Origin: Geosiphon pyriformis uo1
Lineage: Eukaryota; Fungi; Glomeromycota
Length of the DNA stretch: 58,069 nucleotides
Assembly: GCA_016748015.1 (NCBI GenBank)
Contig: JAAOMT010000088.1
Coordinates: 157,978 to 216,046, forward strand
Direction: 5' to 3'
Part shown: piece by piece, positions 2,990-49,486 of the stretch
How the letters are laid out: the number at the start of each line of letters is the position of its first letter
Position numbering within the stretch: the stretch's first letter is position 1
Program-made: the position numbers and the translations under genes
Notes under the pieces: model-generated
The model's database searches: none
Seen by the model: the letters and a program-made list of their open reading frames with translations, nothing else
What the model was told of the DNA's origin: nothing

Positions 2990-3985
2990 AATCTTAAAAA
3001 AACTGCGAATTGTGTTGAATATAATTAAAAAAAACCAATTCAAAAGAATTTAAGTTATTAAAAATATCAAATAAAATTTTTCAAGTATATAAAAAATAAA
3101 TTTTTTTTTAAGTTTAATTTAAAGAACATTAATTAATTTTTACAATTTTTATTTTTTAAATGATAATAAATCTTGAATGATAATTTTTTTTTACTCTTTT
3201 AATAATTAAACCAAAAAAGTTGAAAATTTTTATATTAAATTCTTAAAGCTTTTAATGAATAAATAATACTTATTTCAAGAAAATTTATTTTTTTAATTAA
3301 AATATTTTTAATTAATTTTTTTTTACAAAACAATATATTATTAAAATTTAATAAAAAATCAATTTGGTTCGTTAATTTATATTTTAAAAAAAATTAATAA
3401 TATATAATTAATTTTATATTAGTATATAAAAAATATAAAAAATGACTTACATTAAAAACAATAATTTACATATAAATAAAATAAATCAGTTTAAAACATA
3501 AATTGAAAATTATTTTTTAATTATCATATTTTATACAAATTATTTTTATTTATTTATATGTTAAATTAAACAATTTTTGTTTTGTTTTTAATATAATAGC
3601 AAAAGTTCAATTAAAAAAATTAATAATAATTTGATAAATAATTGAAAATTAAAAATTAAAAATTTTATTATTTTATTTTCTAATCATTAATTACAAAACT
3701 TTGGCACAAAAAAATATTTAAATGTTATATTTAATTTTGATATTTTTTATTTATTTATTTCATTCATAATTAATATTATTAAAAAAATTCTATGTAATTA
3801 AATTAAAAAAAAATTATTTTGTTTATATTTTATCATAATATATTGTATATATATATTAATTAAAATTATAAAAACTTATAAAATTTTTTATTTTAATAAT
3901 TATTAGAATAAATTATTTTTAAAATTAATATTAACAAAAATTTGAAACATTAAATGTTAAAAAAAACTTATCTTAAAATAAATTG
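2990..3985. other. Hyper-AT island (putative hypermutated repeat relic)
   Basis: Almost devoid of G/C and CpG; abrupt return to normal composition on both sides. Confidence 0.7.
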
Positions 3986-4118
3986 GTTGGAGGATAAATG
4001 CGTTGTACGATAATAGTTGGCGGTTGGATTAAACCGTGAATCCAAGGAAAATAATAAATAAATAAATAATTATATTTTTCAATTTATTAAATCATTCAAT
4101 CAAGTATTTAATAAATGG

Positions 4119-14059: not shown

Positions 14060-15690
14060 ATTTCTATATATAATAGTATTTTATTGAATATTAAGGTACG
14101 TGAAGAATTATAATTGTTCTTAATAGTTTTAAAATTTGATAAAATTTATTTTAAATATTATAAATTGTTTAGTAAAACCAAAATTATGTTGCTTAATTTT
14201 AAAAGTTTTTTTTAATTTAACTCTTAATTTATTATTAATAAAATATTTGAATTATATTGTTAATTGGCTTTTTAAAATAAAAAAAAATTAGAATTATTAA
14301 TAAAACTTTTTTGTTTAAGTTTTTTAAATTTAATTTTAAATTTAATTTTTTTAATAAATAATAGTATGCTAAAAGCATAATATTTTTAAAAGTTTAAATT
14401 ATTTTTTATAATAAATTTTACAATAATAATAAATATAATTATTATATTTTTTTTTTCAAAATATAAACAGATTTTTATTAATAAAAATTGTTTTTTTGTA
14501 ATTTTTGCATTTAAATAAAATATTAACTAATTTTTTTTTTGGTAATTTTTGTAAATAAAAATATTTTATCTATTAATTAATTTTTTTATTAAAATAATTT
14601 GGTATTTTAAACCAAAAAGTTTTTAATTGTAATTTTGTTTTGTTTTATTTTATTAATTATTAGTTTTTTTCTTAAATTTGAATATTAAGACTTTTTTAAA
14701 TTATTTGTTAAAAGTATTATAAATAATGAATATTCTAATATATTGTTTTTAATATAAAATTTTTGATTTTAATTTATATTGATCTTTAAAACCCAATTAT
14801 TTTTTATAAAGCTTAATATTAAAATACATTTATAATTAAAACTTTATAATTTTATTAACTATAAAAAAAATTGTTTATTTTATTTATTAAAGTCTTTTTT
14901 ATATTATTACTAATAAAAAAACTGTTTAAGTTAATTTGTTTATATTTATTTTTCATATTAAATTATATAATTAATAATTGAAATTATTAATTATATAACT
15001 TAGCATAATATTATTATAATATTATAAATATATTATTAGATTAATATAGTCTCATATTTTAATTTAAAATTATATTGGTATTAAAAAGTTATTTTAGTCT
15101 TAATTTATTAATAATTTAAATTATTTTAGCATTTTTTATGTCACTTAATTTTTTTATTTATAAAATAGTTTATTAAGATATATAAAGATCACATATAAAA
15201 AATAAATTAGCTGTGTTTAGTTTAAAACACTTGTTGTTATATCGTACTAAATAACAGTTGAACCTCACTCATTAAAAAATATATATATATATTAATGTTT
15301 TTTATTGTTAATATTTGTTTTTTTGATAATATTATATTATAGTATAACAAAACTAAACAATATTATCTATTAATAATAATTTTTTTTGGTATAAATCTAT
15401 TAAAAATAATATATAAAAACATTTTAAAAAGATTTATTAAAAATACTTTTTTTGTTCTGTTTAATAAGAAAAAATGCCTTTTTTTTGTTATAATATTTAA
15501 AACAAAAAAAAATTATAAGAAATATTGTTTTTTGTTAAACTTTAAAATTTTATAATCAGTTGTATTAATAGATTTTTTTTATTTTAAACATTATTAAAAG
15601 CATGTAAGATTGTATTAAATTATAAAACAAAAAGCTTTTTACAGTATTTAATGCTTTTTTATTTTTTATTATTAATATTAAAAGAGTATT
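14060..15690. other. Hyper-AT island; probable eroded 5' portion of nuclease-like pseudogene copy 2
   Basis: Near-total loss of G/C; grades into recognisable paralogous coding sequence at about 15690. Confidence 0.7.
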
Positions 15691-20210: not shown

Positions 20211-20239
20211 GATGCACGTTGCTAGTTAAGGCGTATTTC

Positions 20240-20730
20240 AACCACTCTCGGAAGCAGTTATCGAAGCAATGGATGGATTCGGCAAGCTTTCCGTAAAAGG
20301 GGTGAAATAAAAGGCATTTTGTTATCATAAGAAAAAAAATGAAATTATTGAAAGAAATGTCTGAGGCTTATGATATCATCAGGGGGTGAACACAGTTGTC
20401 TTTCGTCCCAGTAGCTCTTATGACTGATGTATCCATTGGTCAGGTATTGACAGCACGAGACAAAATTATTAGGCGTAATACACAGCGACAACAAGATGCG
20501 CTTTTTTCCCAGTATGTAAGTCATTGCATCAGACTATTACCTCATTATTGTGAAATCGTTTAATGTCTCTTATCTTCATATTTCGTTAATGCATGCTTAT
20601 GAATATCAACAGAAGATAAAGATTTTATTTTTGAAAATTTTTTTTTTCTAGGAGTAATCCTTTATCAGGCATTTGCTTGATGGAGGTCACGCAGGAAAAA
20701 CATGTAATAATCTTATATAGCAATACCTTA
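20240..20730 (+). pseudogene. Short degenerate coding fragment, family unknown
   Basis: MKLLKEMSEAYDIIRG*TQLSFVPVALMTDVSIGQVLTARDKIIRRNTQRQQDALFSQY followed by a GTAAGT donor; contains an internal stop. Confidence 0.25.
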
Positions 20731-23317: not shown

Positions 23318-26300
23318 TACTCTTTTGAAATTTATGCAAATCATTATAAGAAAACTTTTTACTATCAGTAATAATTTTCTTTATGGTAATTTTTAGGCCC
23401 ATATTTTTTGTTTCCTTGGTTTTTCCTCCCTTTAAAAAATTCGAAGGAGTGAAACCATATGAATTCATGCTATTTCAACCCATAAAAGAATGATATTCTG
23501 ACTTATTCAAATAAGGTTACCCATTCGCTTTTTTGGATGACAACAACTTTTTTTCGTTACCTATGTTTGTCAATTCCTAAAAAATTCAAAGTTTCAACTA
23601 ATCGTATCCTTTCGATAAAGAAAAACAAATTAGAAATTTTGCCATGGTTTTTATTATTGTTTTCTCTTTCAAGTTTTATTTCGGGGTTCATTTCGTTTAT
23701 TCTTAATAAGTAGAATTTATATATGAAAATTTTTCTTCATATATAGATCCAAAAACTTTTATTGACATAATTAGTTTAGAAGTAAAAATAGTTTTAACGG
23801 TTCACTAGGTCTACACAAAAATTCTTTGTAAAATATTTAGGAAATAATTTTTTTCATAATTTTACAAAACATATGTTGTACAGCATTTAATCTAGGATTT
23901 TTTCCAGATTTTTGAATTCATTATTTTATCCTTCATTTCAAATACCATTTCTTTGAATATGTTTTGAAAATAAAATAAAATAAAAAATTATCGATATATA
24001 TACATAATACCATCCAGAAGATTTCAACGGGGGAAATAGTTTAAAATTTAAAAAAAAAAGTAACTACTAAAAATTGAGAGTGAAAAAAATTATGGCTGAA
24101 AAACCAACCTAAAGTAATTATTAATGGTATGCATACAACTTCTGGATCCAGCGAAAAATGATATAAAGCACAATAAATTAGGCTGAATTGAGCAATGATC
24201 CTAATTGTTAAACCGATAAAAAAGCGAAAAATTTTATTGAACTAACCGATTTGGCCATTTTGTTCTACCAGACCCTGCCTTTCAATCATTCTAATAATGT
24301 ATTTAGGGCTGAAAATTGTCACGCATTTAAAATAGGCATTATTATTATCATTGTCATTTTTTTGCTCAAATTATTTATTTTTAGTCACATGAATATCTTT
24401 TTTCGGTGGGGAACATCTATACTTTTTGAGAATTTTATTCAGCCATTGTTCTCATTCACCCATTTAAAAAAATAATGTATGATAATATGTAACATTAAAT
24501 GAATAATAGTATGAGCATATCGCATCATTGCATGAATAATAAAATAGTGTGAAAATAACTTTGAATATAATATCACGAGGCTATTATAGCCAATGATATC
24601 AAGATTTTTGTCACAATTAATGATTATTTAAAGATTTAGAAACTTTTTTTTTTCTTTTTCCTCGAGAAAAATTTTTAATCTATTCTATGTGACCAATCAA
24701 AGTTCAAAGGAAATAAAGAGATGCGTTAAAGAAAAATTTTTTTATAGTTTAGTGTAGGTTATAGCATATGTATAGATCGTCAATCTATGATTTTCAATAA
24801 GCAATTAATAATGATAACATCCTAAATTTCTAAAAACGTTTCCAAGCATTAGATTAATGTGGAGTGAGATACAAGTATTTTATCTCTCGTCTCGAAACTT
24901 ATTCTTTGGCTGTGAGTTTCCAATTTAAGAATTATAACCATTCAAGCCTAATTAAAGTTTTCAGGGGAAATTTTATTTATTTATTTATTTATTTATAGAT
25001 ACATCATATGAGGATTCCTTTCAAAGATTTTTATTGAATCAATTTTCAGCCTTTTATCTTGAACCATTTAAGGATAGAGTTTCCTAAATATTTAGTTAGA
25101 GCTATTTGAATTCATAATGAAAAATGATGAATTTTGGTATTTAAATTCACGCTAAATCTGAAAAGCTAGTTAGAATCTCGGTTCTTTTTAGATAGATATT
25201 TCTTTGACGATTATTCTATGAAAATTAACGTTAGAATAATCTGACATTAATAATCAAAAGAAAAATCTGTGGTTATTTGAGATCTAGTAAAAAATTTTTT
25301 GGTTCAATGGTTTGAGAAATGGCTCATAAAGTTTTATTCAAGTCGAATAAGTTATATTTGTATTGGTTAATTTTCTAACTAGATAAATATATCTACAAAA
25401 AATATTTCAATTATTGAGTTTGTTTTGATCTTTAAAGTAAAAATTTTATTATTTTCATCAAATCTTTTTTTTTTTTTTAATTTTGGAATTTAAAAATATT
25501 TAAATCCTTTATTGAATAATTGGGCTAATTAATATTGAAATTTCAATTAGAGCTGAATTAGAATGTAAAAAAGAAGAAGTTTTCGAAAGTAATTTTCAAG
25601 TAAAATAATTTTGTGAAATAAATTAACGATGAGAAATTCTTTAAAATTGTCTTTTTTGTCATTCTATTCAAATTTCTTTTAAAAGTTTCTTTTAAAAAAT
25701 TTAAATTGGGAGCGAATAAAAGAATTCTTTCATCAATGGTATTAGGATATTTATTATAAAGTATGTTTAAAGAATTTTTGATTCAAGCTTCATTAAAAAT
25801 GTTTGAATTTACCACAACTAATTTTATTTATTTATTTATTTATTTATTTTTCATAAAAAATAATTGAAAAATTTTAATGATAAAATTTTGATGTTTTAAA
25901 TAAATTTTCAATCATTTATTTTTTAATTTAAAAAAATAAAAATCAATATTTACCTGATAAAAATCAATTTGAAAGAATAAATTAAAAAAAGTAAGATTAT
26001 ATAATTAAAATTACATAATTAAAAATTATTTCCTTAATATCGAAACATTAAATTGGAATACCATATTCAAATCTTTGGAAAAGAATAAAAATTTTTTTTT
26101 CCTTGTACTTATTCAATCTCAACTAATAAAATATCCTATTTTTAGAACTAATTAAAGCAAATATCTGCAGTCAAACTTTATTGGGAATTTTTAAATTGAT
26201 GTTCAATTACAGTTTATAATTTTCCGGAGTATGTTACCCTTTTGATAATAAATATTTTGATGCTTATTTATGATCAAATAAGTAGATTTATTGATCGATA

Positions 26301-26789
26301 TATTGATCAAAAAACCAATTAAACGAAACTTGTTGTGTGATAATAAATTTGTTTAGCATATACATGTATTTATGTTTTATCAATGCTTAAACAAAAGAAA
26401 CGTGTTAATATGAATTGCTGGTTTGGTAAATTGAGTTTTTCTTCTTATTCGAAAATTTGAAAGCTTTATCAGCAAAAATAGAACCCTTTGCTAGATCATT
26501 TTTTTCAAAACATAAGCTCGAAAGCAAAATATTTTGAAATTTTTCGAATAGAATTCTTTATGCTCTTTTAAATACACACAACAAGAGTCAACATTTCTTT
26601 TTAAATCCTAAAACAAAATAAATAATATTTTAATCGAAATTCTCTTATAAAAGTATGTATCAAAATTTTTTAAATGATGATTAGACTTTACTAACTTCAT
26701 ATCTTTTGAAAATATATAAAATTTTTAATAATTCACGCATAATTATTAAAATCTTCAAATTTTAAAAGAGACACACTCGTTCTTTCAAA

Positions 26790-27334
26790 ATGAATAAACC
26801 AAATTTTTTTGTCTCATTTAAGAAATTTATTTTAATGAATTTTTTGATATTATTCCTCGTAATTTTAAATGTTCTAGCGTTTCCTGCCGATCAAAACAGT
26901 AAGTCTCAAGATTTTATCATGATAAAATTACTTTCAAATTTCCCTTTAACATCTAAAAATTTATATCTTTTTTTAAAAACATTATAAATTTAATTAAAGA
27001 ATTGAAATGCTTAATTTGCCCGCGATTCATTCCTCAATGCCCAGTTTGCACCACTAACGAAAAATGCGTTAAAAAAGGCTATTCATGTAAGGCCTGTGCA
27101 TCTGCTAGATGTGTTCCACTAGTTAATAAGGAAGAATCTGGATCCCAAAAATTTGGTGGTGATCTTTGTATTAACCCTGCGTTATGTTACAAAGAACCAA
27201 GCTGTAACCCAAAATCTTGTAATAGTGATGAAGAATGTAGTGTTGTTCAACCCAGTTGTAATAATTGTGCTACCATTAAATGCACCCCTAAAGATTATAA
27301 AAAAGTCAAAATCATGAGATCGTTTGAGCAATAG
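26790..27334 (+). CDS. Small secreted Cys-rich protein with two tandem 8-Cys Opy2-N-like modules; 2 exons (26790 or 26836-26898; 27000-27334)
   Basis: Signal-peptide-like MNFLILFLVILNVLAFP and an in-frame GTAAGT..AAAG intron. Modules: CLICPRFIPQCPVCTTNEKCVKKGYSCKACASARC and CINPALCYKEPSCNPKSCNSDEECSVVQPSCNNCATIKC. Confidence 0.85.
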
Positions 27335-29489: not shown

Positions 29490-31180
29490 ATTTAGAGAAT
29501 TTTGGAGTTAAATTTAAGATTATTTAAGAATAAAATAATAATTGAAACAAATTAAATAAATAATAAGAATTAAAAACAAATTTCTTGTTTAAATTTGAAT
29601 TAGTAACAACAATATTTATTTATATAAAGCTGTTGTATTTAATTCATGTTTTTTCTCAATAAAAATTTTCAAAGTATTTATTAATCTTATTTAATTTACC
29701 ATTAAATCTTAATAATCTAATACTTTTTAATTTTTTAATGCTGTATTATTTTATTCATTTCTTTAGTTTTATATTTACTGCCTAATATATATTTACAAGT
29801 TTTATTAAATTTAATTGAAAAAAGTTAAAATTTTTATTTTTATTGTTTTAAAAAGATTCAAAGCATCAAATATTTTGGTAGATTTATAAACACTTATGTA
29901 TTGTTTGGTGTTAATAAAAATTGTTAATTGTTTCAACAAAGTCTTTTTTAAGCTTAGATTATATATTAGACTGTTTAAAAAAAGTTTATCTTTAAATTTT
30001 GCACTAATTAATTAGCTTTAAGTTGTTTTAACATTTATTTAAAATAATCAAACTTTTAAAACATTGTTGTAAATATTTAAGACTTAAAAAATTTTTCAGT
30101 CTCTTATAAATAAGCTTCAAGTTTTCAAATTCTTAAAATATTATAGTTTTTCAAATTTATGAATTTAATTTATAAGATTATTAAAATTTGTATATAATGT
30201 AATTTGTTTTTTTTTTTACAGCAAAATGCTATATTGCGATTGTTTGATCTGATTTCTAATTAAAAAAAAAAAGTTTGTTTTGTTTATATTATAAATTTAA
30301 TTTAAAAATAAAAATAAAAATAAATTATTTGTTTTATAATTAATTAGAATTTTACAATAGGTTTTTTTTATTAACAAATATTGTTTTTTGATATATTTTG
30401 ATTATTTGGAAAAAATGTAACATATTTTTAAAAATTTTTAACTTTTTTGTTAAATAATTCAGTTTTTTAATTAATATATTTTTTTAAAAAAAATTGTTTA
30501 ATATTAAATAGATTAATATCAATTTTTTTAAAGTTCTAAAATAATATTATATTATAATATTATTTTATATTTAAAGTTTTGTTTTTAATCAATAGTAAAA
30601 AAAAGATACTTTACTAAATTGTAGCTAATATTATATTTAATTTTTATATAATTGTAATTCCATATTATATAATTATACTTAATTGTATTTAATATATTAT
30701 TTATTTTTTATATTTGCAATTTCATATTTAATTAAAAGTTACTTATATATTATTTGGTTAAAAATTTGAGCAATTGTTAACTTAATAATAATAATAATAA
30801 TAATAATAATTTATTTATTTATTTATTTTACATGTTTTTTTTTGGTCTTTTATTGTTACGTATATAAAGACATAATTTGTATTTTTGAAAATTTGTAAAG
30901 TAATTTATTTTTAAATGACATTTAAGATAAAGTAAAGCAACCAAAAAATAATAATTATTTTTATTATTTTTAAAATTCAATAATCTTTTTTGTAAATAAG
31001 TATTACTTAATCATAAAATATGTATATACATTATTTGAAAAAAAATGTACAAATTAATAAACACTTTCTTAATAAAATTTTTTAAAAACTTATAACAAAA
31101 TTTTTTCGAAAAAATTTGAGTTAAGAAAAACAAAAATATACAATTTTAATTTTAATAAAATACAATTTATAAATGATCTT
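29490..31180. other. Hyper-AT island; its right part is probably the eroded 5' portion of the Fanzor relic
   Basis: Extreme AT content grading into recognisable TnpB-like codons at about 31200. Confidence 0.65.
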
Positions 31181-31199
31181 TGCTCAAAGAAAATAAATT

Positions 31200-31445
31200 A
31201 AATACCTAGTTAAAATTTAAGAATGGTAAAGTCAAAAGATTAAAAAATACGATTGGGTCTATGAATTAAAAGATCTTACACTTGCAGGCAGAAATAAATA
31301 GAAAGGCAGTCGCATTTTTCACTTACAAATGTGATGCTATTATCATTCTTGCCTTTGAGATATCAGACATGGTGAATGGAAAAAAGTAAAAATGATATTA
31401 TGCTGGGTAATTATCGATTCGTCAACGTCGGAGTATTACTATTAT
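31200..31445 (+). mobile_element. Fanzor/TnpB-family (IS607-type, Fanzor2-like) RNA-guided nuclease relic, bridge-helix to RuvC-II region
   Basis: KVKRLKNTIGSMN*KILHLQAEINRKAVAFFTYKCDAIIILAFEISDMVNGKK*, then after frameshifts MLG and YRF(R)QR. Matches the remembered pattern I.NL..EVH.K...FL...FD.IIIP.FE.S.MV.......ML.W.HYRFRQRL. Confidence 0.7.
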
Positions 31446-34192: not shown

Positions 34193-34297
34193 ATAAATAA
34201 CAGACTAACAATTATCAATTCCTCACCACCTAACCCTAAAATTTAATTCAGTTATTTGATGATCGATTGTTCATGATTTTCTATTCCGTATTCATTG

Positions 34298-34626
34298 GCT
34301 ATTTGAATGTTGAATTGCGAATTACTAGTGGGTGATGGTTATTTGAATGTTGAAATCGCGCATTTTTGATGGCCAGTGGTTATTCGAATGTTGAGTTGCG
34401 AATTATTGGTGGGTGGTGGTTATTCGAATGTTGAGTTGCGAATTATTGATGGCTGGTGGTTATTCGAATGTTGAGTTGCGAATTATTGATGGCTGGTGGT
34501 TATTCGAATGTTTAGTTGCGAATTATTGATCGCTGGTGGTTATTCGAATGTTTAGTTGCGAATTATTGTTGGCCGGTGGCTATTCGAATATTTAGTTGCG
34601 AATTATTGGTGGGTGGTGGTTATCCG
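34298..34626 (+). repeat. 40-bp minisatellite, 8 copies plus a partial
   Basis: Unit ggttattcgaatgttgagttgcgaattattgatggctggt with an exact 40-bp period (34378, 34418, 34458, 34498, 34538, 34578). Confidence 0.95.
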
Positions 34627-34637
34627 TCAATTGTTGG

Positions 34638-35190
34638 TGTCAAACTAGAGTCAAGATCAATAGGGTCTTCTTTTCCCGCCGATTTTGCCAAGCCCGTTCC
34701 CTTGGCTGTGGTTTCACTAGATAGTAGATAGGAAGAGTTTAACCCATGATGCACATCAATAACCGTAAGTGGAGCAGACATTCGGCAGAATGTCTGCACG
34801 CAGAGGTATAACAATTCATGTCATTGACCATAAGTGGAAGCAGACATTCGGAAGAACGGGTGCACGCACAGAGGTATAACAATTCATGTCATTGACCGTA
34901 AGTGAAAACAGACATTCGGCAGAATGGGTGCATGCACAGAGGTTAGAGAACACCACACTTGGCGATATAAAGGAGTTGGAAACCCCGTGCTTGGTTGAGT
35001 TTCTTCGGTTAAAGGTTGGGGTTCTTTCCGGTAAAGGATGCCCCCTCCCTCACCCAACACTTAGAGCTAGAAGAGATACGTCAACACCCTTACCTGGATT
35101 GTTCTATCAACTAGAGGCTTTTAACCTTGGAGACCTGCTGCGGTTATCAGTACGACTCGGGGCGAGAATGAACCTCTTAGATTTTTTATT
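34638..35190 (-). pseudogene. Rearranged 28S/LSU rRNA-derived sequence (domain III-IV-V pieces), not a functional rDNA unit
   Basis: Minus strand carries collinear LSU blocks: gtcgtactgataaccgcagcaggtctccaagg..agcctctagttgatagaa (35157-35087), gctctaag, gaagaaactcaaccaagcacgg (35006-34983), and cctatctactatctagtgaaaccacagccaagggaacgggcttggc...gaagaccc...ttgactctagtttgaca (34734-34638), with large internal deletions. Confidence 0.9.
34763..34943 (+). repeat. 65-68 bp tandem repeat (about 2.7 copies) inserted in the LSU-derived sequence
   Basis: Units start at 34763, 34828 and 34896; the first has a perfect hairpin GCAGACATTC-ggca-GAATGTCTGC (34774-34797). Confidence 0.9.
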
Positions 35191-36171: not shown

Positions 36172-36676
36172 TTATGCGACCACGTTATTTTTGATGAATT
36201 CAGCTAAAAAAAATATCATGAAGGTTTTGTTTATAATCGATGGCTCTGTGCTATCATATCCGTGTACTTTTGTATAGAAAAATCTATTTCTGAACATACA
36301 ATAGATTGTAATCTTATATTCCAATGTAAATCTGCTATGAATAAAACAGATCATAGGAAACAAGTCAAATTATTAAAATTAAAACATTAAAAAGATTCTT
36401 TTTCCTGAAAATATTTTACATAAGAAAATATCGTTCCATATGATCCCAAAGTTGACACAGCTGGAATTGCGATATTACTGTGGCCTGATTGAAAATCTTT
36501 TGAATCATCCAGAACTTAAAAAGCCCGGAATCATCTTTTTTATTATAAAAATTTAATCGAAAATATGTAATTGCTGCAAATAAAAGCACAATTAATAATG
36601 TTTTTTGTATAAAATCAATAAATACCTTGATTAATTTATGCACAAATAAAAAAAGTGATTTAAAATATATCTGCAT
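36172..36676 (-). pseudogene. Truncated GT34 (GMA12/MNN10-like) glycosyltransferase remnant
   Basis: N-terminal membrane anchor, then NRFFYTKVHGYD (cf. NR..YA..HGY) and PSIINKTF..F.LAEFI (cf. P.I...M..FP.AEWIWWLD); stops before the DxD motif. Confidence 0.45.
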
Positions 36677-37263
36677 ATATTTTCTATAAATACTTTAAAA
36701 ATTGTATAAATCAAAAGACCAAATTTTCAAATAATATTGATTTCGATTTATTAATTAATCAAAAAATGAATCTTTGATTAAAATTAAATTTAGAACTAAT
36801 AAGTAAAAACATATAATAAAAAAAGAAAAAAAGAGCTTTGAATTAAATATTGTAAATTATTCAATAAAAGAAATAAATAGAATTTAGAATAATAAGAAAG
36901 ACATCTGGAAATTTTAAACTATGTCAATTATATTTTTCTGTAAAAAAAAGTTTAAACAACTCAGTTAATAATCAAGTCAACAATTTGTTTTTAAAATAAA
37001 ATATTATTCTGTATAATTAATATATAGTAGGTGAATAAAAAATTAACTATAATATTAATATTGGCCAATTATTGTTAACAAATCTAAGAAGTTTGGTAAA
37101 AAAATTGATTTTTCAATAAAACTTAAAGTGCAAAATATCTTTTCAACAAATAAATTAATGAGGTGATAGTGGAAGGTTGATTAATATAAATTATCTCGTA
37201 AAAAATTTTACTAAAAATGCCCATTGGGCTCGACCAAGATATTTACCACAACCGCCCTCTTGA

Positions 37264-38733: not shown

Positions 38734-39327
38734 TCTGTTTTTCAAAGGTATTTTAATTTTAATTTGTGATTGAGAATTATTAATTTTTTTCTTTTTTTGA
38801 TAAAGATTTGGGTTTCGATTGATGTATAATTGTTATGGTGTTGAAAAGTGAGGCTTTAATTGCAATTCTACAAGATATGCATAATTTTAGAATGATGAAC
38901 CATATTTAAATTTCACAATTTATTAGTATTACTGTATGAGGAAAATTCCAATGATTAAGAACTGTTTTGATTATTTCATTTAAAAAATCAATGAATCATA
39001 TCTAATTTTTCTCATTTTAAAAAGGGGACTAGAATTTTTACAATAGTTTTATTCACAGCTTTTTAAAAAAAATTGATCAAAATTTATATGTTCCAAATTC
39101 ATAGTATTTTTGCTTTATTTTATTTCTTAACTGTTAATCAAATTTTAATATATGGTTTATGTTTAATAATATGATATTTTTATTTTTACTTTTATATAGA
39201 TTGATTTTAGAGTTTATTTAACATTGACTTAAACATTATTTATTTTTCAAATAATAAGAAACTACATATAAAATAAATTTTTATTGCTATCATCAAGTTT
39301 AAGTAACAGGAAAATAAAGCCATTTGT

Positions 39328-39504
39328 NNNNNNNNNNNNNNNNNNNNNNNNNNNNNNNNNNNNNNNNNNNNNNNNNNNNNNNNNNNNNNNNNNNNNNNNN
39401 NNNNNNNNNNNNNNNNNNNNNNNNNNNNNNNNNNNNNNNNNNNNNNNNNNNNNNNNNNNNNNNNNNNNNNNNNNNNNNNNNNNNNNNNNNNNNNNNNNNN
39501 NNNN
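39328..39504. other. Assembly gap (N run)
   Basis: Run of N. Confidence 1.
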
Positions 39505-39509
39505 TAACT

Positions 39510-40191
39510 CTAAGCTATAATATTATAACAATTTGTGGATCAGAATGAAAAAGAGAAATTAGAGTAAAGGACAAAGAGATTAAAATTTTACAAAATATAT
39601 ATTTGACTATATATATATTTCGTAATTAAAACAATTACAAGTTTTTTTAAAAAAAATAACAATAGTCAAAATAAAATGTCAGATTTTTTTCAATTGATGA
39701 TTTTGATTCTGAACCAATATTAATCGGTTTTGTGTGTTTCTTAATTAATCGCAAAATTTGTAATTATCTTCAGAAAGATACGAAAACTAAAAAATGAAAA
39801 TATATTTTAAAAATATATTTTAAAGATTTAAATTTGTATTCTATTTTTACTTCAAGTATTTATTTATTTATTTTTGGCCTTTTTTCGCTATAGTTAAAAA
39901 GCTTTTTGTGTCAAAACAAGAATATTAGCACAAGTAAATATCAAAATTTGAAAATGGTTTGAAATTAAAAAATTTATTCTGAAATTTAATAAATGATGAT
40001 AATAGATCACTCAGAGAAAACAATTTTTATACGAGTCTTCCTAACACCTTTTCGGATATGCCAAGTATGTGATAAAAATCTAATATTTCATATCACCTAT
40101 AGCAAAGGTCACGTTTAGTCACGTGTGTCGATAATAACTTGTCGATAACATCTGATTGATATTGTTAATATTAATTTTAATTATAACAATA

Positions 40192-40243
<52 letters not shown>

Positions 40244-41376
40244 TTGATTTGCTCTTAATTTTGTTATTTTTTAAGCTAATAAAGGTTCCTCAAATTGAAA
40301 TCCTTATTCCCACATTGTCATTATATGAATTTTCCTATTATCTTTTCGCGTATTTTTTATCTTTGCTCTTCTATTTCTATTTATTCATTTGTTTGTATAT
40401 TTATTTAAGATGTCTGTTCTTTAAACTACTTTATGTTCTCACTTATAACGCTGTCTCTTATACACATCTAAGCTATAATATTATAACAATTTGTGGATCA
40501 GAATGAAAAAGAGAAATTAGAGTAAAGGACAAAGAGATTAAAATTTTACAAAATATATTTGACTATATATATTTCGTAATTAAAACAATTACAAATTTTT
40601 TAAAAAAAAATAACAATAGTCAAAATAAAATGTCAGATTTTTTTCAATTGATGATTTTGATTCTGAACCAATATTAATCGATTTTGTGTGTTTCTTAATT
40701 AATCGCAAAATTTGTAATTATCTTCAGAAAGATACGAAAACTAAAAAATGAAAATATATTTTAAAATTATATTCTTTTAAAGATTTAAATTTGTATCCTA
40801 TTTTTACTTCAAGTATTTATTTATTTTTGGCCTTTTTTCGCTATAGTTAAAAAGCCTTTTGTGTCAAAACAAGAATACTTGCACAAATAAATATCAAAAT
40901 TTGAAAATGGTTTGAAATTAAAAAATTTATTCTGAAATTTAATAAATGATGATAATAGATCACTCAGAGAAAACAATTTTTATACGAGTCTTCCTAACAC
41001 CTTTTCGGATATGCCAAGTATGTGATAAAAATCTAATATTTCATATCACCTATAGCAAAGGTCACGTTTGGTCACGTGTGTCGATAATAACTTGTCGATA
41101 ACATCTGATTGATATTGTTAATTTTAATTTAAATTATAACAATACATTATTATTTTTATTATTATTATTTTGATTTGCTCTTAATTTTGTTATTTTTTAA
41201 GCTAATAAAGGTTCCTCAAATTGAAATCCTTATTCCCACATTGTCATTATATGAATTTTCCTATTATCTTTTCGAGTATTTTTTATCTTTGCTCTTCTAT
41301 TTCTATTTATTCATTTTTTTGTATATTTATTTAAGATGTCTGTTCTTTAAACTACTTTATGTTCTCACTTATAACG
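39510..41376 (+). repeat. ~0.93-kb direct duplication (39510-40450 / 40468-41376), probably an assembly artefact
   Basis: Near-identical copies differing by SNPs and microsatellite length, joined exactly by an adapter sequence. Confidence 0.9.
40451..40469 (+). other. Nextera/Tn5 mosaic-end adapter contamination
   Basis: Exact CTGTCTCTTATACACATCT. Confidence 0.98.
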
Positions 41377-41739
41377 AGATTAATCAATTTTTATTAGAGC
41401 TTTTCAATAAAGTCTTTTACCTATCTGAAGTCCTTGTAATTAGGCTTAACCAAAATAAAAGTCACTAAAAGGCATATTAATAAAACTTTGTTCAATAATA
41501 AAAAGATGAAAGGTTTATCATTTGAGTACTCAGATGAAGTTAATTTTCGAGACCAACTTTTATTCACATATACAATCAAAAAAATTTCCATCTAATTAAA
41601 AACACCGCGTTAAGTTTTGTTACATTATTGGAAGAAAGAAGACCGCTCAGCATATGAATATCAAGCTTCCCATGTCAGCTATCTATTATAATATCCAAAA
41701 AATTGAATATAAAAGGCAATGCCCATCTAAAAAGATAAT

Positions 41740-42141
41740 NNNNNNNNNNNNNNNNNNNNNNNNNNNNNNNNNNNNNNNNNNNNNNNNNNNNNNNNNNNNN
41801 NNNNNNNNNNNNNNNNNNNNNNNNNNNNNNNNNNNNNNNNNNNNNNNNNNNNNNNNNNNNNNNNNNNNNNNNNNNNNNNNNNNNNNNNNNNNNNNNNNNN
41901 NNNNNNNNNNNNNNNNNNNNNNNNNNNNNNNNNNNNNNNNNNNNNNNNNNNNNNNNNNNNNNNNNNNNNNNNNNNNNNNNNNNNNNNNNNNNNNNNNNNN
42001 NNNNNNNNNNNNNNNNNNNNNNNNNNNNNNNNNNNNNNNNNNNNNNNNNNNNNNNNNNNNNNNNNNNNNNNNNNNNNNNNNNNNNNNNNNNNNNNNNNNN
42101 NNNNNNNNNNNNNNNNNNNNNNNNNNNNNNNNNNNNNNNNN
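41740..42141. other. Assembly gap (N run)
   Basis: Run of N. Confidence 1.
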
Positions 42142-42310
42142 GACCAAGTACCCGAGCACGATTCCATCAGCTAACGTCCTTTTTCCAGCCAATAGACATT
42201 CTCAGGCAAGGGGAATCTTCTGATGACGATCTGTTTTAAAAATTCATGGGGTTATCACCAAATCAATTACACTGACAAATTTAATATATAAACAGGCTTC
42301 AAAAAAAAAA

Positions 42311-42455
42311 AACTCACCAAAACACTCAACTCTAAACCAACCCTCCCAAACACTCTACTCTAAAAACTCACGAACCAACCCTCACAAACACGCAACTCCA
42401 AACTAACCCTCCCAAATACTCAACTCCAAACGAACCTTCCAAACACGCAACTCAC
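42311..42455 (+). repeat. C/A-rich degenerate tandem repeat (~28-bp unit, about 5 copies)
   Basis: caaacactcaactccaaaccaaccctcc-like units. Confidence 0.8.
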
Positions 42456-43019
42456 TTTAAGAAATAGTTTTAAGATTCCTCATAGATTAAAGAAGATTGG
42501 AAAACTGTTCCAACTTTCTAAAATTAAGTCTTGAAGTATATCTTATTATTAAATAGTTACAACTTAGTTAAAATTTGGGGATTTCTATGTTTAATGAGAG
42601 ATTTTTTATTTCCAAATATAGAAAGGTTTTGTAAATAATTATGAGTGTGTTATGTTCGAATACCATTTCTTCTTAAAACGCCAAATTATTAAAGCTTTAT
42701 ACAGTGAAAAATTTACATTAAATTGGAAAACAAAAAATAGTTTTTAAACTTTTTTAAATATTTTTGTATTCATTATAAGTTAAACAGAATTTTTATCATT
42801 CAGGGTTTAAAATATTATGTTTTTAACAAATTTTCATTATAGATAAATTAAAATTTTGAATTGATAAAATTTATCGATCGTCTATATAATTTTTGGCTTG
42901 TAGCTACTTGGAGTTTAGAATCATAAAGTTTTACTTTTCCAAATGAAAACTAGAATTTACGACTTTACATTTAGCTAGTTCAATGAATGTCAGTAAAAAG
43001 AATTTAACTCGTTAAATAA

Positions 43020-44960
43020 ACTGTATATTTATAATTTCAAGGTAAAAAAATTATCAAGTAAAACATAAAATAACAACAATTGTATTATTTTGTTAACAAT
43101 ATTATAAGTAATTTTGTTGAATTATATTCTGTAATTTTGTGGTAATATCTTTCTATAATATCTGAAAGTTTTTTGTTTAGAGTTTTTTGTATAAAAAACA
43201 AAAATTTAATAATTTAATGACTTTTAATACTTAATGTCTTACTTTCTTAACATAATAACTGGTTTATTCTGGTATTTTTGACTCTTTTAATAAGCTATTA
43301 AATTTTTTATAAGTTAACCTTACGCTTTAATTTTGTGTTTTTTATGAAACTATTCTTAATATTATAATATTAATGCTTATTATTTTTAATTAATTCAACA
43401 ATAAAATAAACAACAACAGAATGAAATTAAAAAATTAGTATTTTATTAATAACTATAATTAAAAGCTATTAGTTTAATTCGGTAAAGTTCATAAATTTAT
43501 GCTTTTGATATCTGTTGTTTTAAAAGCAATATAAATAAAATGAGCATTTAATAATAATAATAATAATAATTTTTTATTACATATAAAAAACAATTTATAT
43601 ACTTTTTATATATAACTAGTTATTTAACCCAGTTAAAATTATACTAATTAACCACATAAAATACTGAATTAAAAGCCAAACTATCTAATTTTTGTAACTT
43701 CAAAAATATTATATTTTTGATATAATATGAACTTTTTTAAATTTTACATAATAAACTATAAAATAATATTTTAAAAAACGATATTAATTGATTATTAAAA
43801 ATTTAAAAATTAAATTAAAAAAACATGATAATATTATTTTTAATATTTTCTTCTATTATTATTAATCTCATATTATGTTTTTTTTTCAAATTTTTTATTA
43901 ATTTTTTTAATTCATTCAAATTATACTTTTGAGTTTTAAAATTTTTAACTTTGTAAAAATAATAATAATAATATATAAAATCAAAAAAAAATATATATAA
44001 ACTAAAATTTGTTTTTGCTTAATTTTAGAAATTATTGTTTTTAAATTGTATAAAATCAGTATTAACATGCAAATAATATCAACATAATTATTAGAAATTT
44101 TTTTTAAATATTATTATAAATTTTGAATAAAAAAAATTTATATGTAACTTATAAATTTATTTAATTTTATTTTACATTAACCTAATTTAACAGCTTTGGA
44201 AATATAAAGTTAAATTAACAATATGTAGTTTTGATTTTTACATAACATAAATTAAAAACAAATAACTGTTAATAATTATATATTTAATTTACGTATTTTA
44301 CAAAACCAAATAAGTATAAAGAACAAATATTAAAATTATTAAAAATTTCGATTCAAATTTTTCTAGTTTTAAAGACCAAAAGTGATATATTTTTAATATT
44401 ATTTTATTGTTTATTAAAAACTGTTTAACTTTTATTTTATTTTTTATTGTAAATTTTGTTCTGTTTAATAATATTTGTGTGATTAATTATTTTAAGTATT
44501 TTTTAATATCAACATTATTTAAATACTTAGTTTAATTATAAAATTATTTTTATAAAACTTAATTAGCATTTATAAAATTGAAATTTTTTGGTTATTTTAC
44601 ATACTAAACAACTTTAAATTTTGAATTGAATTTAAGATATACTTTTACATTTATTAATTGTTTTAAAAGTTTTTTTTTTTTTTTAATATAAATAAGTCAA
44701 CTTTAACATTATAAAATAAACCAAAAATTAAATGAAAATACAATAAAAACTTATTTTTTCTTGGCTAAAATTTCTTCAGTTTTAAAAATAATTAATTTAG
44801 TCCTTTTAGTAGATATAAAAGCAGAAAAATGATTTGTTAACTTGCAAGCTAATATTTGCCAACAAAAATTGTATTTTGGAGATTTTTGATTTTTTGCAAG
44901 GTTTCTAAAATCTTTTGTAAATATTTTTAAACAATAATATCATTTTCAAATTTTACTTAT
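43020..44960. other. Hyper-AT island
   Basis: Extreme AT content; residual C/G mostly in ApC/GpT contexts. Confidence 0.7.
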
Positions 44961-47900: not shown

Positions 47901-49486
47901 GCCTTATCGTGGCGAAACTTGGCAGAAAGAAAGGAACAATTTATTTATTGTAGTTGAGCTTCTTAAGCCTTTTTACACCTTTCAGCTTTGAATTATTACA
48001 GAATAAATTATCGGTCATAAAGATTCTTAAGTTGTCACACGAAATTTGACCCCGAATCTATCAAATCTCACTTAGCAGCTAGGTATGGTGTAGGTTCAAT
48101 TTTTCGATGATCTATTCAAGATTTTGTCTTAATACATTGTATTACTTTTTCTTATCTTACCCACAAGAACTCATGACATTTTTCGTTCGATAACTCTTTT
48201 TCATAAATCGAATGCCTAATTGGAACAAATAATAAAGATTGAATATTAGATTGTATGAAACTAAAATTTTATCTGAATAAAGTGACACGATTTCTCAGAT
48301 AGGATTATTCAGACTCAAACTGAAAAGCTTGCATGAAAATTTTTTTTTCAAAGTTGAACTTTCATTCAAAGATCATAAATAAAAAATATTTATTTCTTCA
48401 ATCACTGAATAGCAAAGATCTGTCTTACGTAAAAATATCAGCCCAAGCTATAATTGGGGTGAAAACAAGAAAATTTCCAAAATTGAATTTTTGCCTCGCC
48501 TTTCATGAGACTCATCTGAAATTCTCCGCTGGAGTTAAAAAATATGCGCGATATTTCATTTTTGCAAGGTCATCTAGTATAAAGATTTGACTGATAATTT
48601 AGAGGGTCAAACCGTTAGTTTGAAAGTCGTGCCCCAAAAAACCTATAGGCCGACATGTATAGCAAAAATCAACTAAACAATTTAAAATTTGTGATTATCG
48701 CTCATGGCTCAGAACTTTTTTACACTCAATGCAATGTCACCTCATCCGATATATTCCGTAAGGAATTTGCGAGTGAAAATTACATCATTCTCCGGCCTCT
48801 GTTTAGAACATTCTTTGCAAGTCCCTAGAATTTTTCCCCTTAATAGTTCAATTGACCGAGTCTTCTCGGGTAAAAATATTCCGGTCAAAATATAAATAAA
48901 ATGAAAAAGATGTCATGATGTCAACACGTTTAGGGTCCACAATGATATCAGATAGACCTGAGAGAAGAGATCTCAAAACAACGATTCTCAATTGGCAGTC
49001 AATTTTTGTTTATGATTGTATAATTTTATGGGATTAAATTCAAAAACCAAACTTGAAATTTCCGGGATTAAGTATACTAATTTAAAAATATTGAAAATTT
49101 CAAAAAACGTTACGAAAATATTTTTTAAAAACATTTAGAAATTTAATTTCAATGACAAAAAAAAATAATCATCTTCCGCCAAAAACTCAACAATATTTGG
49201 GGAAATTGAGAAATTTTTCAACAAGAAATTTCTGATCATTTTTCACCGAATTTGTTGCGAGGTATTAAATTTAAAATGCTTTTTACACTTTGAATAGATT
49301 CTGAAACATTTAGTTTGCAAAGAGATATGAACCATGTCGTGATATTAAATCAGGATACATTTGTCTAAAATAATTTCGGACTCGGGAATATTCTTAAATC
49401 TTTGTGTTGTAAACATGTTTACAAACCAAATAAAAATTCAATTCAGAGGAAAGTGTCATCTGAGATTGAGAAAAAATAAATAAATA

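Follow-up and report, generated by a model that had tools for sequence, protein, structure and literature searches.

The DNA considered here is a stretch of 58,069 nucleotides from the glomeromycotan fungus Geosiphon pyriformis uo1 (contig JAAOMT010000088.1, positions 157,978 to 216,046; G000:C643:157978-216046 in the searched genome, which comprises 128.3 Mb in 792 contigs), and this whole stretch is referred to as the window. The published assembly of the species measures 129 Mb in 795 scaffolds, with 29.25% G+C and 64% repeats (PMC9453076). The guanine plus cytosine (GC) content of the window is 27.6%, and it contains short stretches at 9-15% GC, the AT islands, among them the one at positions 43020-44960, for which a loss of TpC and its complement GpA had been claimed. 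The islands contain eroded copies of high-copy repeats, and their peculiar composition is probably the product of a hypermutation that resembles repeat-induced point mutation (RIP) and is confined to transposons, with a non-canonical specificity that is read from the 5' side and relaxed with respect to context.

The original prediction was based on hand counts over two segments of 180 nucleotides, and recounting reproduced these figures exactly: the island segment 44161-44340 holds 3 TC+GA versus 18 AC+GT (p = 9e-5), and the counts of the ordinary, presumably intergenic segment are those listed for the control stretch in Table 1. The p values for window counts are binomial and refer to the window-wide proportion of TC+GA to AC+GT, which number 5992 and 4635, respectively, beside 6174 CA+TG and 5104 CT+AG. 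Across the whole island of 43020-44960, 79 TC+GA stand against 140 AC+GT (p = 1.9e-9), together with 136 CA+TG, 109 CT+AG, 5 CG and 18 GC. The same bias had been seen by eye at 14.1-15.7 kb and is borne out there by counting (44 TC+GA versus 93 AC+GT between 14100 and 15700). When the window is divided into tiles of 200 bp, the ratio of TC+GA to AC+GT amounts to 1.2-1.5 at 16-60% GC, to 0.7-0.8 at 8-16% GC, and to 0.43 in the single tile below 8%.

The signature is not a consequence of low GC alone, since the AT-rich stretch of 25001-27000 keeps the ordinary TC+GA excess. This stretch, 36501-37000 and 41501-42000 (GC 14-23%) match none of the sampled repeats and all have the ordinary predominance of TC+GA over AC+GT, so that the genome harbours two kinds of AT-rich DNA, which are separable by this ratio.

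Beyond the window, 72 loci (~250 kb on many contigs) were collected by a genome search with three stretches of the window. In island tiles of 100 bp with GC below 10%, which come from 68 loci on other contigs, the ratio of observed to expected occurrences is 0.50-0.57 for TC/GA and 1.3-1.5 for AC/GT, and it is 2.2 for GC, 0.15 for CG, 1.06 for CA/TG and 1.0 for CT/AG. The corresponding values in tiles above 30% GC are 1.0 for TC/GA, 0.9 for AC/GT, 1.1 for GC, 0.5 for CG, 1.2 for CA/TG and 1.0 for CT/AG. TpC/GpA therefore stays depleted relative to ApC/GpT in the islands after correction for composition, and the statement that CpA and TpG persist is right in relative terms (1.06-1.10 in islands versus 1.2-1.27 in normal DNA). 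A small sample had been given as a caveat. In the larger one, the ratio of TC+GA to AC+GT falls below 1 in 51 of the 53 loci on other contigs that carry at least 300 nt of island, and the pooled island ratio is 0.508 (bootstrap confidence interval 0.454-0.553), where tiles with a GC content of 28% or more give 1.208.

Furthermore, repeat-derived and unique tiles differ at matched GC (0.72 versus 1.19 at 18-22%, Fisher p = 1e-10; 0.85 versus 1.23 at 22-26%, Fisher p = 5e-8), which rules out low GC as the cause. The depletion of TC without that of CT ties the effect to the 5' neighbour of the cytosine. Homopolymer slippage, misalignment and a general clustering of bases by strand were also considered and rejected on this ground, because misalignment of T runs would inflate both dinucleotides.

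The islands prove to be repeat copies. Many other AT islands of the genome share sequence with positions 43070-44020 and, more weakly, with 44370-44670, and the first look of the genome search returned 1855 candidates for the window island at these positions, which contains family A, and 1016 for 14.4-15.0 kb, which lies in the family B island. All the retrieved copies reside within stretches of 5-14% GC. In the independent assembly contigs of a public run, 93% of the sampled words of the window are present, and the summed depth reaches ~20000 on the family A core, which corroborates both the sequence and the very high copy number of that core. The copies of families A and B contain no open frames; the frames of the ancestral column calls are better, yet still interrupted. 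As a further observation on family A, two copies lie head to head in inverted orientation, ~20 bp apart (L028/L029, G000:C646:244314-244975).

The erosion stops where the repeat stops. GC drops from 33-45% to 4-12% exactly at the start of repeat coverage, solo insertions of 0.8-0.9 kb in gene-like DNA included, and at 10 clean edges the step between ~11% and ~35% GC is complete within 50 bp, with a flank that is immediately normal in composition. Mutation is thus confined to the repeated segment, the GC step coinciding with the limit of repeat coverage, which is one of the properties by which RIP is recognised. The silenced state that the original prediction ascribed to the affected DNA is putative.

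The direction of change is the loss of cytosine. Both families were aligned to profile models, family A with 31 copies over 416 columns and family B with 29 copies over 775 columns. A simple majority consensus of family A contains 3% GC, as against 8-12% in its copies, which means that G and C are mostly private to single copies; family ancestry is accordingly rejected as the source of the bias. The number of copies with C (or G) in a given column has a bimodal distribution, with a Poisson-like class of ~0.6 per column (~2% per site per copy) and a broad tail, reaching up to 27 copies, that comprises the ancestrally C/G sites. Columns were called ancestrally C/G when at least three copies share C with T in the others, or G with A in the others. 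The ancestors obtained in this way have 24% GC in family A and 37% GC in family B, and the copies have 7-20%.

In both families, C>T/G>A has altered a fraction of 0.63-0.69 of the sites open to it, whereas the fraction stands at 0.016-0.027 with T>C/A>G, at 0.02-0.03 with C>A/G>T and below 0.01 with C>G/G>C. Cytosine transitions thus exceed the reverse change ~40-60-fold per site, and the excess of C>T/G>A far above all other changes in repeats is another property of RIP. Gains of cytosine have no preference for ApT, as T>C amounts to 0.029 after A versus 0.023 after T in ancestral T/A columns. The alignments of families A and B therefore support the view that cytosine loss, rather than base composition or biased T>C gain, makes the bias.

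Cytosine loss depends on sequence context. Survival was scored by defining ancestral sites on the least-eroded third of the copies and counting them in the remaining ones, which avoids ascertainment bias. A cytosine survives with a frequency of 0.15 if T precedes it, 0.27 if C does, 0.35 with A and 0.36 with G in that place, and by 3' base the surviving fraction is 0.11 before G, 0.25 before T, 0.28 before C and 0.32 before A. ACA is the most protected trinucleotide (0.49; GCA 0.30), and survival is 0.13 for TCA, 0.13 for TCC, 0.15 for TCG, 0.16 for TCT, 0.06 for ACG and 0.11 for CCG. Loss was also modelled by logistic regression, with copy effects, bootstrapping over sites and A at the same position as reference; the odds ratios of loss are 2.39 (1.86-3.08) for T at -1, 1.88 (1.29-2.66) for C at -1, 0.95 for G at -1, 1.58 (1.23-2.07) for T at -2, 1.84 (1.18-2.67) for G at +1 and 1.27 for T at +1, with no effect at +2. 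The pattern is present in families A and B separately (Mann-Whitney, T versus A, p = 2e-5 and 1e-6; pooled 1e-10). From the least to the most eroded copies the ratio of the TpC to the ApC rate is 1.5-2.5, and this stability is expected of a single process. The excess of GpC follows from the same 5' rule, because both cytosines of GpC are preceded by a purine.

Two side points concern these contexts. Among the surviving cytosines of the islands, CCT/AGG and TCC/GGA (shares 0.006 and 0.009) are ~5-8 times rarer than CCA/TGG and ACC/GGT (0.049 and 0.040), a scarcity larger than the per-site survival values predict. Duplex stability was considered as a cause of the context effect and rejected by reasoning from published nearest-neighbour energies, as CCA is more stable than ACA, yet is lost faster.

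On repeats, cytosines are indeed lost preferentially after a 5' pyrimidine, but this preference only modulates, about two-fold, a hypermutation that strikes all contexts and is confined to transposons. The original prediction had proposed a mutator of 5'-pyrimidine context: the faster loss after T and C stands (odds 2.4 and 1.9), whereas its scale needs revision, the preference being only about two-fold and laid over a loss in all contexts. The likeness to a strict TpC mutator of the APOBEC3 type does not hold, since 60-65% of cytosines are lost even after a 5' purine and CpG is lost about as strongly as TpC. The distinction from ascomycete RIP at CpA is confirmed by the fact that a 3' A is the most protective neighbour, and CpG decay alone is correctly set aside, as non-CpG cytosines lose 50-87%.

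Repeats are not all affected. Family C, which served as a control, is a GC-normal multi-copy family (GC 39-42%, ~1.6 kb, at least 207 first-look candidates) whose copies are 70-90% alike, and one copy has three open frames, none with a Pfam match. It shows no detectable excess of cytosine transitions in what is a small sample: T>C is 1.6%, similar to the islands, C>T is 4.5% and transversions are plentiful. By 5' base, its C>T fractions are 4.7% after A, 4.8% after C, 4.1% after G and 4.5% after T, so that no TpC bias is visible. In addition, a duplicate of ~98% identity, which covers normal flank and the start of the island of 43020-44960 (Table 1), differs from its counterpart by 10 transitions and 15 transversions, an extra 166-bp match in L002 (43335-43500) included, with no excess in the island part; this indicates that no hypermutation has occurred since the copies separated, and the differences are too few for a context spectrum. 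The counterpart of 42142-43500 on G000:C592:88381-96624 is split and partly inverted, and could stem from a recent segmental duplication or from a haplotype left uncollapsed. The load of C>T per copy shows no positive correlation with other substitutions (rho -0.39 and 0.05), and so does not behave like a clock. Altogether, the process looks episodic and element-directed, and the picture is not that of a slow, uniform decay affecting every repeat or AT-rich DNA in general. The features of the window are collected in Table 1.

Table 1. Islands, repeat copies and comparison stretches of the window (counts are TC+GA/AC+GT unless stated otherwise)
Feature	Position	Strand	Remarks
AT island of the original prediction	43020..44960		GC 14.2%; eroded core ~43030-44720
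AT island with the same bias	14060..15500		Per 500 bp: 18/26, 12/26, 18/34
Third AT island, TC+GA < AC+GT	29501..31000		Per 500 bp: 26/34, 21/31, 15/29
AT island, GC ~10%, weak bias	3001..4000		TC+GA 38 versus AC+GT 43
AT-rich contrast, matching none of the sampled repeats	25001..27000		GC 17-23%; 61/27, 47/19, 46/34, 54/29
Control stretch of the original prediction	48121..48300		TC+GA 25, AC+GT 16
Family A copy	43105..43563	+	nhmmer E = 7e-90; keeps 46-63% of inferred ancestral C/G, among the least eroded
Second, partial, more degraded family-A-like copy	43832..44047	+	Aligns where 43165-43464 does in other loci
Family B copy	14385..14975	+	nhmmer E = 1.4e-71; GC 8.5%; keeps 20-22% of ancestral C/G
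Family C fragment, GC-normal	31164..31392	-	Control for the ordinary substitution spectrum
Family C fragments	20213-20499; also loci L066, L070, L071, L072		GC-normal family
~98% identical duplicate	42142..43334		On C592, split between L002 and L003; normal flank and island start

Two further features of the window are the 579 N in four 500-bp tiles within 39001-42500, which are assembly gaps beside AT-rich stretches, and the GC-normal tandem arrays at 34296-34623 and 34762-34943 (8.2 copies of a 40-bp unit and 2.7 copies of a 68-bp unit, respectively).

These observations can be assembled into a probable account. The AT islands would be relics of high-copy transposable elements in which, after the copies had left their source, ~65% (range 50-90%) of the cytosines on both strands were converted to thymine by a process that ends within ~50 bp of the element edge and spares neighbouring DNA and some other repeat families. 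The conversion rate is set mainly by the 5' bases, with T fastest, C intermediate and A and G slowest; T at -2 adds to it, and a following G (CpG) raises it too. The direction, the context effects, the restriction to repeats, the equality of the strands and the absence of a clock follow from the counts themselves. Because the erosion is far advanced, a two-fold rate difference leaves mostly ApC/GpT and GpC among the survivors, with TpC/GpA and CpG nearly gone. Such an episodic, element-directed hypermutation from cytosine to uracil or thymine would have an outcome like that of the RIP-type genome defence, and it would presumably be carried out by a dedicated enzyme system acting on inserted, double-stranded copies.

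Several points weigh against this account. The context preference is weak, about two-fold, unlike that of RIP at CpA or APOBEC3 at TpC, and same-strand clustering of the changes is likewise weak (z = 2.3 at lag 1). Family C and the 1.2-kb duplicate of 98% identity are not hypermutated, which makes repetition by itself an insufficient trigger, and the spectrum of family C consists of 39 C>T events, with which a two-fold TpC bias in ordinary DNA is compatible. The sampled islands were all reached by homology to two families of the window, so that they are genome-wide in position and non-random, and column-wise ancestral calls overlook sites that are gone in nearly all copies. Finally, APOBEC_N (PF08210), OTT_1508 (PF14441) and DddA-like (PF14428) domains have no match in the genome, a weak negative given that the search proceeded exon by exon with short domains. 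Ordinary CDA-fold domains occur at five loci, and ~six loci match a DNA-methylase domain (PF00145), among them C657:788280-789372, C657:820713-821336, C646:684535-685894, C371:423510-423692 and C692:422414-422635. Two of the PF00145 matches (G000:C702:1327528-1327926 and G000:C666:681025-681548) contain several in-frame stops, which could mean that methyltransferase genes are broken or eroded there, or that introns separate the exons.

The loss could instead be passive and continuous, the elements being methylated or heterochromatic while poorly repaired deamination of (methyl)cytosine proceeds in all contexts, with the bias arising from methylation or from the chemistry of deamination. CpG is the most depleted dinucleotide, with its observed/expected ratio of 0.15 and its odds ratio of 1.84 for G at +1, and CpG methylation is found on the transposons of the related fungus Rhizophagus irregularis (PMC8647823); the existence of loci with DNA-methylase domains in the genome and the equal loss on both strands point in the same direction. 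Decay of this kind is nevertheless unlikely. Copies richer in other substitutions do not carry a higher C>T load, family C has only 4.5% C>T at a similar T>C divergence, and the 98% duplicate lacks a transition excess in its island part. Moreover, the 0.8-0.9 kb solo insertions within gene-like DNA have suffered as much erosion as the copies of large islands, with edges sharp to 50 bp, and non-CpG contexts lose 60-85% of their cytosines, which is beyond the reach of CpG-only methylation.

Editing before integration would account for several of the same observations in a different way, with an APOBEC-type single-strand deaminase acting on replication or transposition intermediates so that the copies arrive hypermutated. 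The very sharp edges, the copy-specific and age-independent load, the read-out of the 5' side at -2 and -1, and the fact that some families are affected and others spared would all fit. Strand symmetry is what makes this very unlikely: in family B the surviving fraction is 0.338 for C and 0.347 for G, no copy has a significant difference, and C>T equals G>A in every copy, whereas cDNA editing is expected to be strand-biased. A loss of 65-85% on both strands also lies far above known single-round editing, the strand-coordinated clustering is weak, and the exon-by-exon search of the genome returned no APOBEC-like domain.

As Geosiphon lives at the soil surface, sunlight was considered as well, since poorly repaired ultraviolet photoproducts in compact chromatin give C>T at dipyrimidines (TC, CC), and the order of loss, TC before CC before AC and GC, fits the dipyrimidine rule. 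We regard it as highly improbable, because cytosines that have no adjacent pyrimidine (GCA and, less so, ACA) lose 50-70%, CT/AG is not depleted (observed/expected 1.0), neither the DNA 50 bp beyond the element nor other repeat families are affected, and a dependence on CpG is no feature of ultraviolet damage.

That there is no mutational signature at all, the bias being inherited from one or two AT-rich families or created by slippage or alignment error, might be suspected from the small number of families behind the sampled islands and the abundance of A/T runs, and it can scarcely be maintained: G and C are private to each copy (consensus 3% versus 8-12% GC), two unrelated families have the same context effects, native AT-rich DNA has no bias, and slippage or misalignment cannot yield a depletion of TC without one of CT. 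Biased gain, in which T>C/A>G transitions favouring ApT create the ApC/GpT excess, might be considered because AC and GT are single-transition products of AT, but can practically be dismissed, since the gains have no preference for A over T as 5' neighbour (0.029 versus 0.023) and amount to only ~2% per site.

Repeat-directed C-to-T hypermutation is viewed as a speciality of ascomycetes, with a TpCpG variant in relatives of rusts and smuts. The episodic hypermutation favoured here resembles RIP as found in Neurospora crassa and other Pezizomycotina, where it depends on RID or DIM-2 and takes place in the premeiotic dikaryotic phase, in that C>T/G>A changes affect two strands, are confined to repeats and leave AT-rich blocks that sharply border intact genes. 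Unlike in RIP, the context in the islands is the 5' side (T > C > A, G) together with CpG, CpA is the most protected 3' context, and not every sizeable duplicate of high identity has been mutated, as family C and the 1.2-kb duplicate show. By the classical RIP indices the islands count as 'positive' (TpA/ApT 1.06; (CpA+TpG)/(ApC+GpT) 0.88). The low substrate index stems from the surplus of ApC/GpT and not from a loss of CpA, so that a RIP-positive verdict from the standard indices is reached here on the wrong grounds.

In Pucciniomycotina (Microbotryum, Puccinia, Melampsora), hypermutation of transposons occurs strictly at TpCpG, and partial matches are not elevated (PMC3318451). It shares with the islands the RIP-like C>T change on repeats and the importance of a 5' T; it differs in that TCA, TCC, TCT and TCG are lost alike in Geosiphon (survival 0.13-0.16) and the CpG effect does not hinge on the 5' base. 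The read-out at -1 and -2, the preference for a 5' pyrimidine and especially T, and the mobile-element targets recall AID/APOBEC enzymes (APOBEC3A/B at TpC) and the bacterial double-strand deaminase DddA (5'-TC), but the preference here is about two-fold, strand bias is absent, clustering is weak and the exon-by-exon domain search of the genome gave no match. The CpG ratio of the islands is like that left by methyl-CpG decay of the vertebrate type, which differs in that every context is affected here, with 60-85% of all cytosines gone, and CpG is only ~1.8 times likelier to be lost. We found no published description of this erosion in Geosiphon in the literature. A kingdom-wide screen detected RIP-like repeat signatures in Ascomycota only (PMC12543289), and no RIP signatures were reported in Gigaspora or Mucoromycotina (PMC8647823); for Glomeromycotina, neither study saw a sign of RIP. 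What the islands carry is probably the mark of a RIP-like genome defence, unusual in its sequence preference and without a published case in this fungal group.

A more specific possibility, which is doubtful at present, is that Geosiphon and perhaps other early Glomeromycotina possess a dedicated transposon-directed DNA cytosine deaminase system that reads T or a pyrimidine at -2 and -1 and works on both strands of inserted elements. It would represent an analogue of RIP with an origin independent of the ascomycete RID pathway.

To conclude, if the favoured account is true, this kind of genome defence would extend to a mycorrhizal lineage, and it would partly explain why the Geosiphon genome is AT-rich and made up of repeats to 64%. 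The fingerprint of a TC+GA/AC+GT ratio below 1, an excess of GpC and a loss of CpG would separate hypermutated relics from native AT-rich DNA, and the search for the responsible enzyme would be narrowed. The Glomeromycotina lineage is regarded as asexual, and to our knowledge sex has not been observed in the group; if the hypermutation, like RIP, belonged to a sexual stage, its presence would have a bearing on cryptic sex in these fungi.

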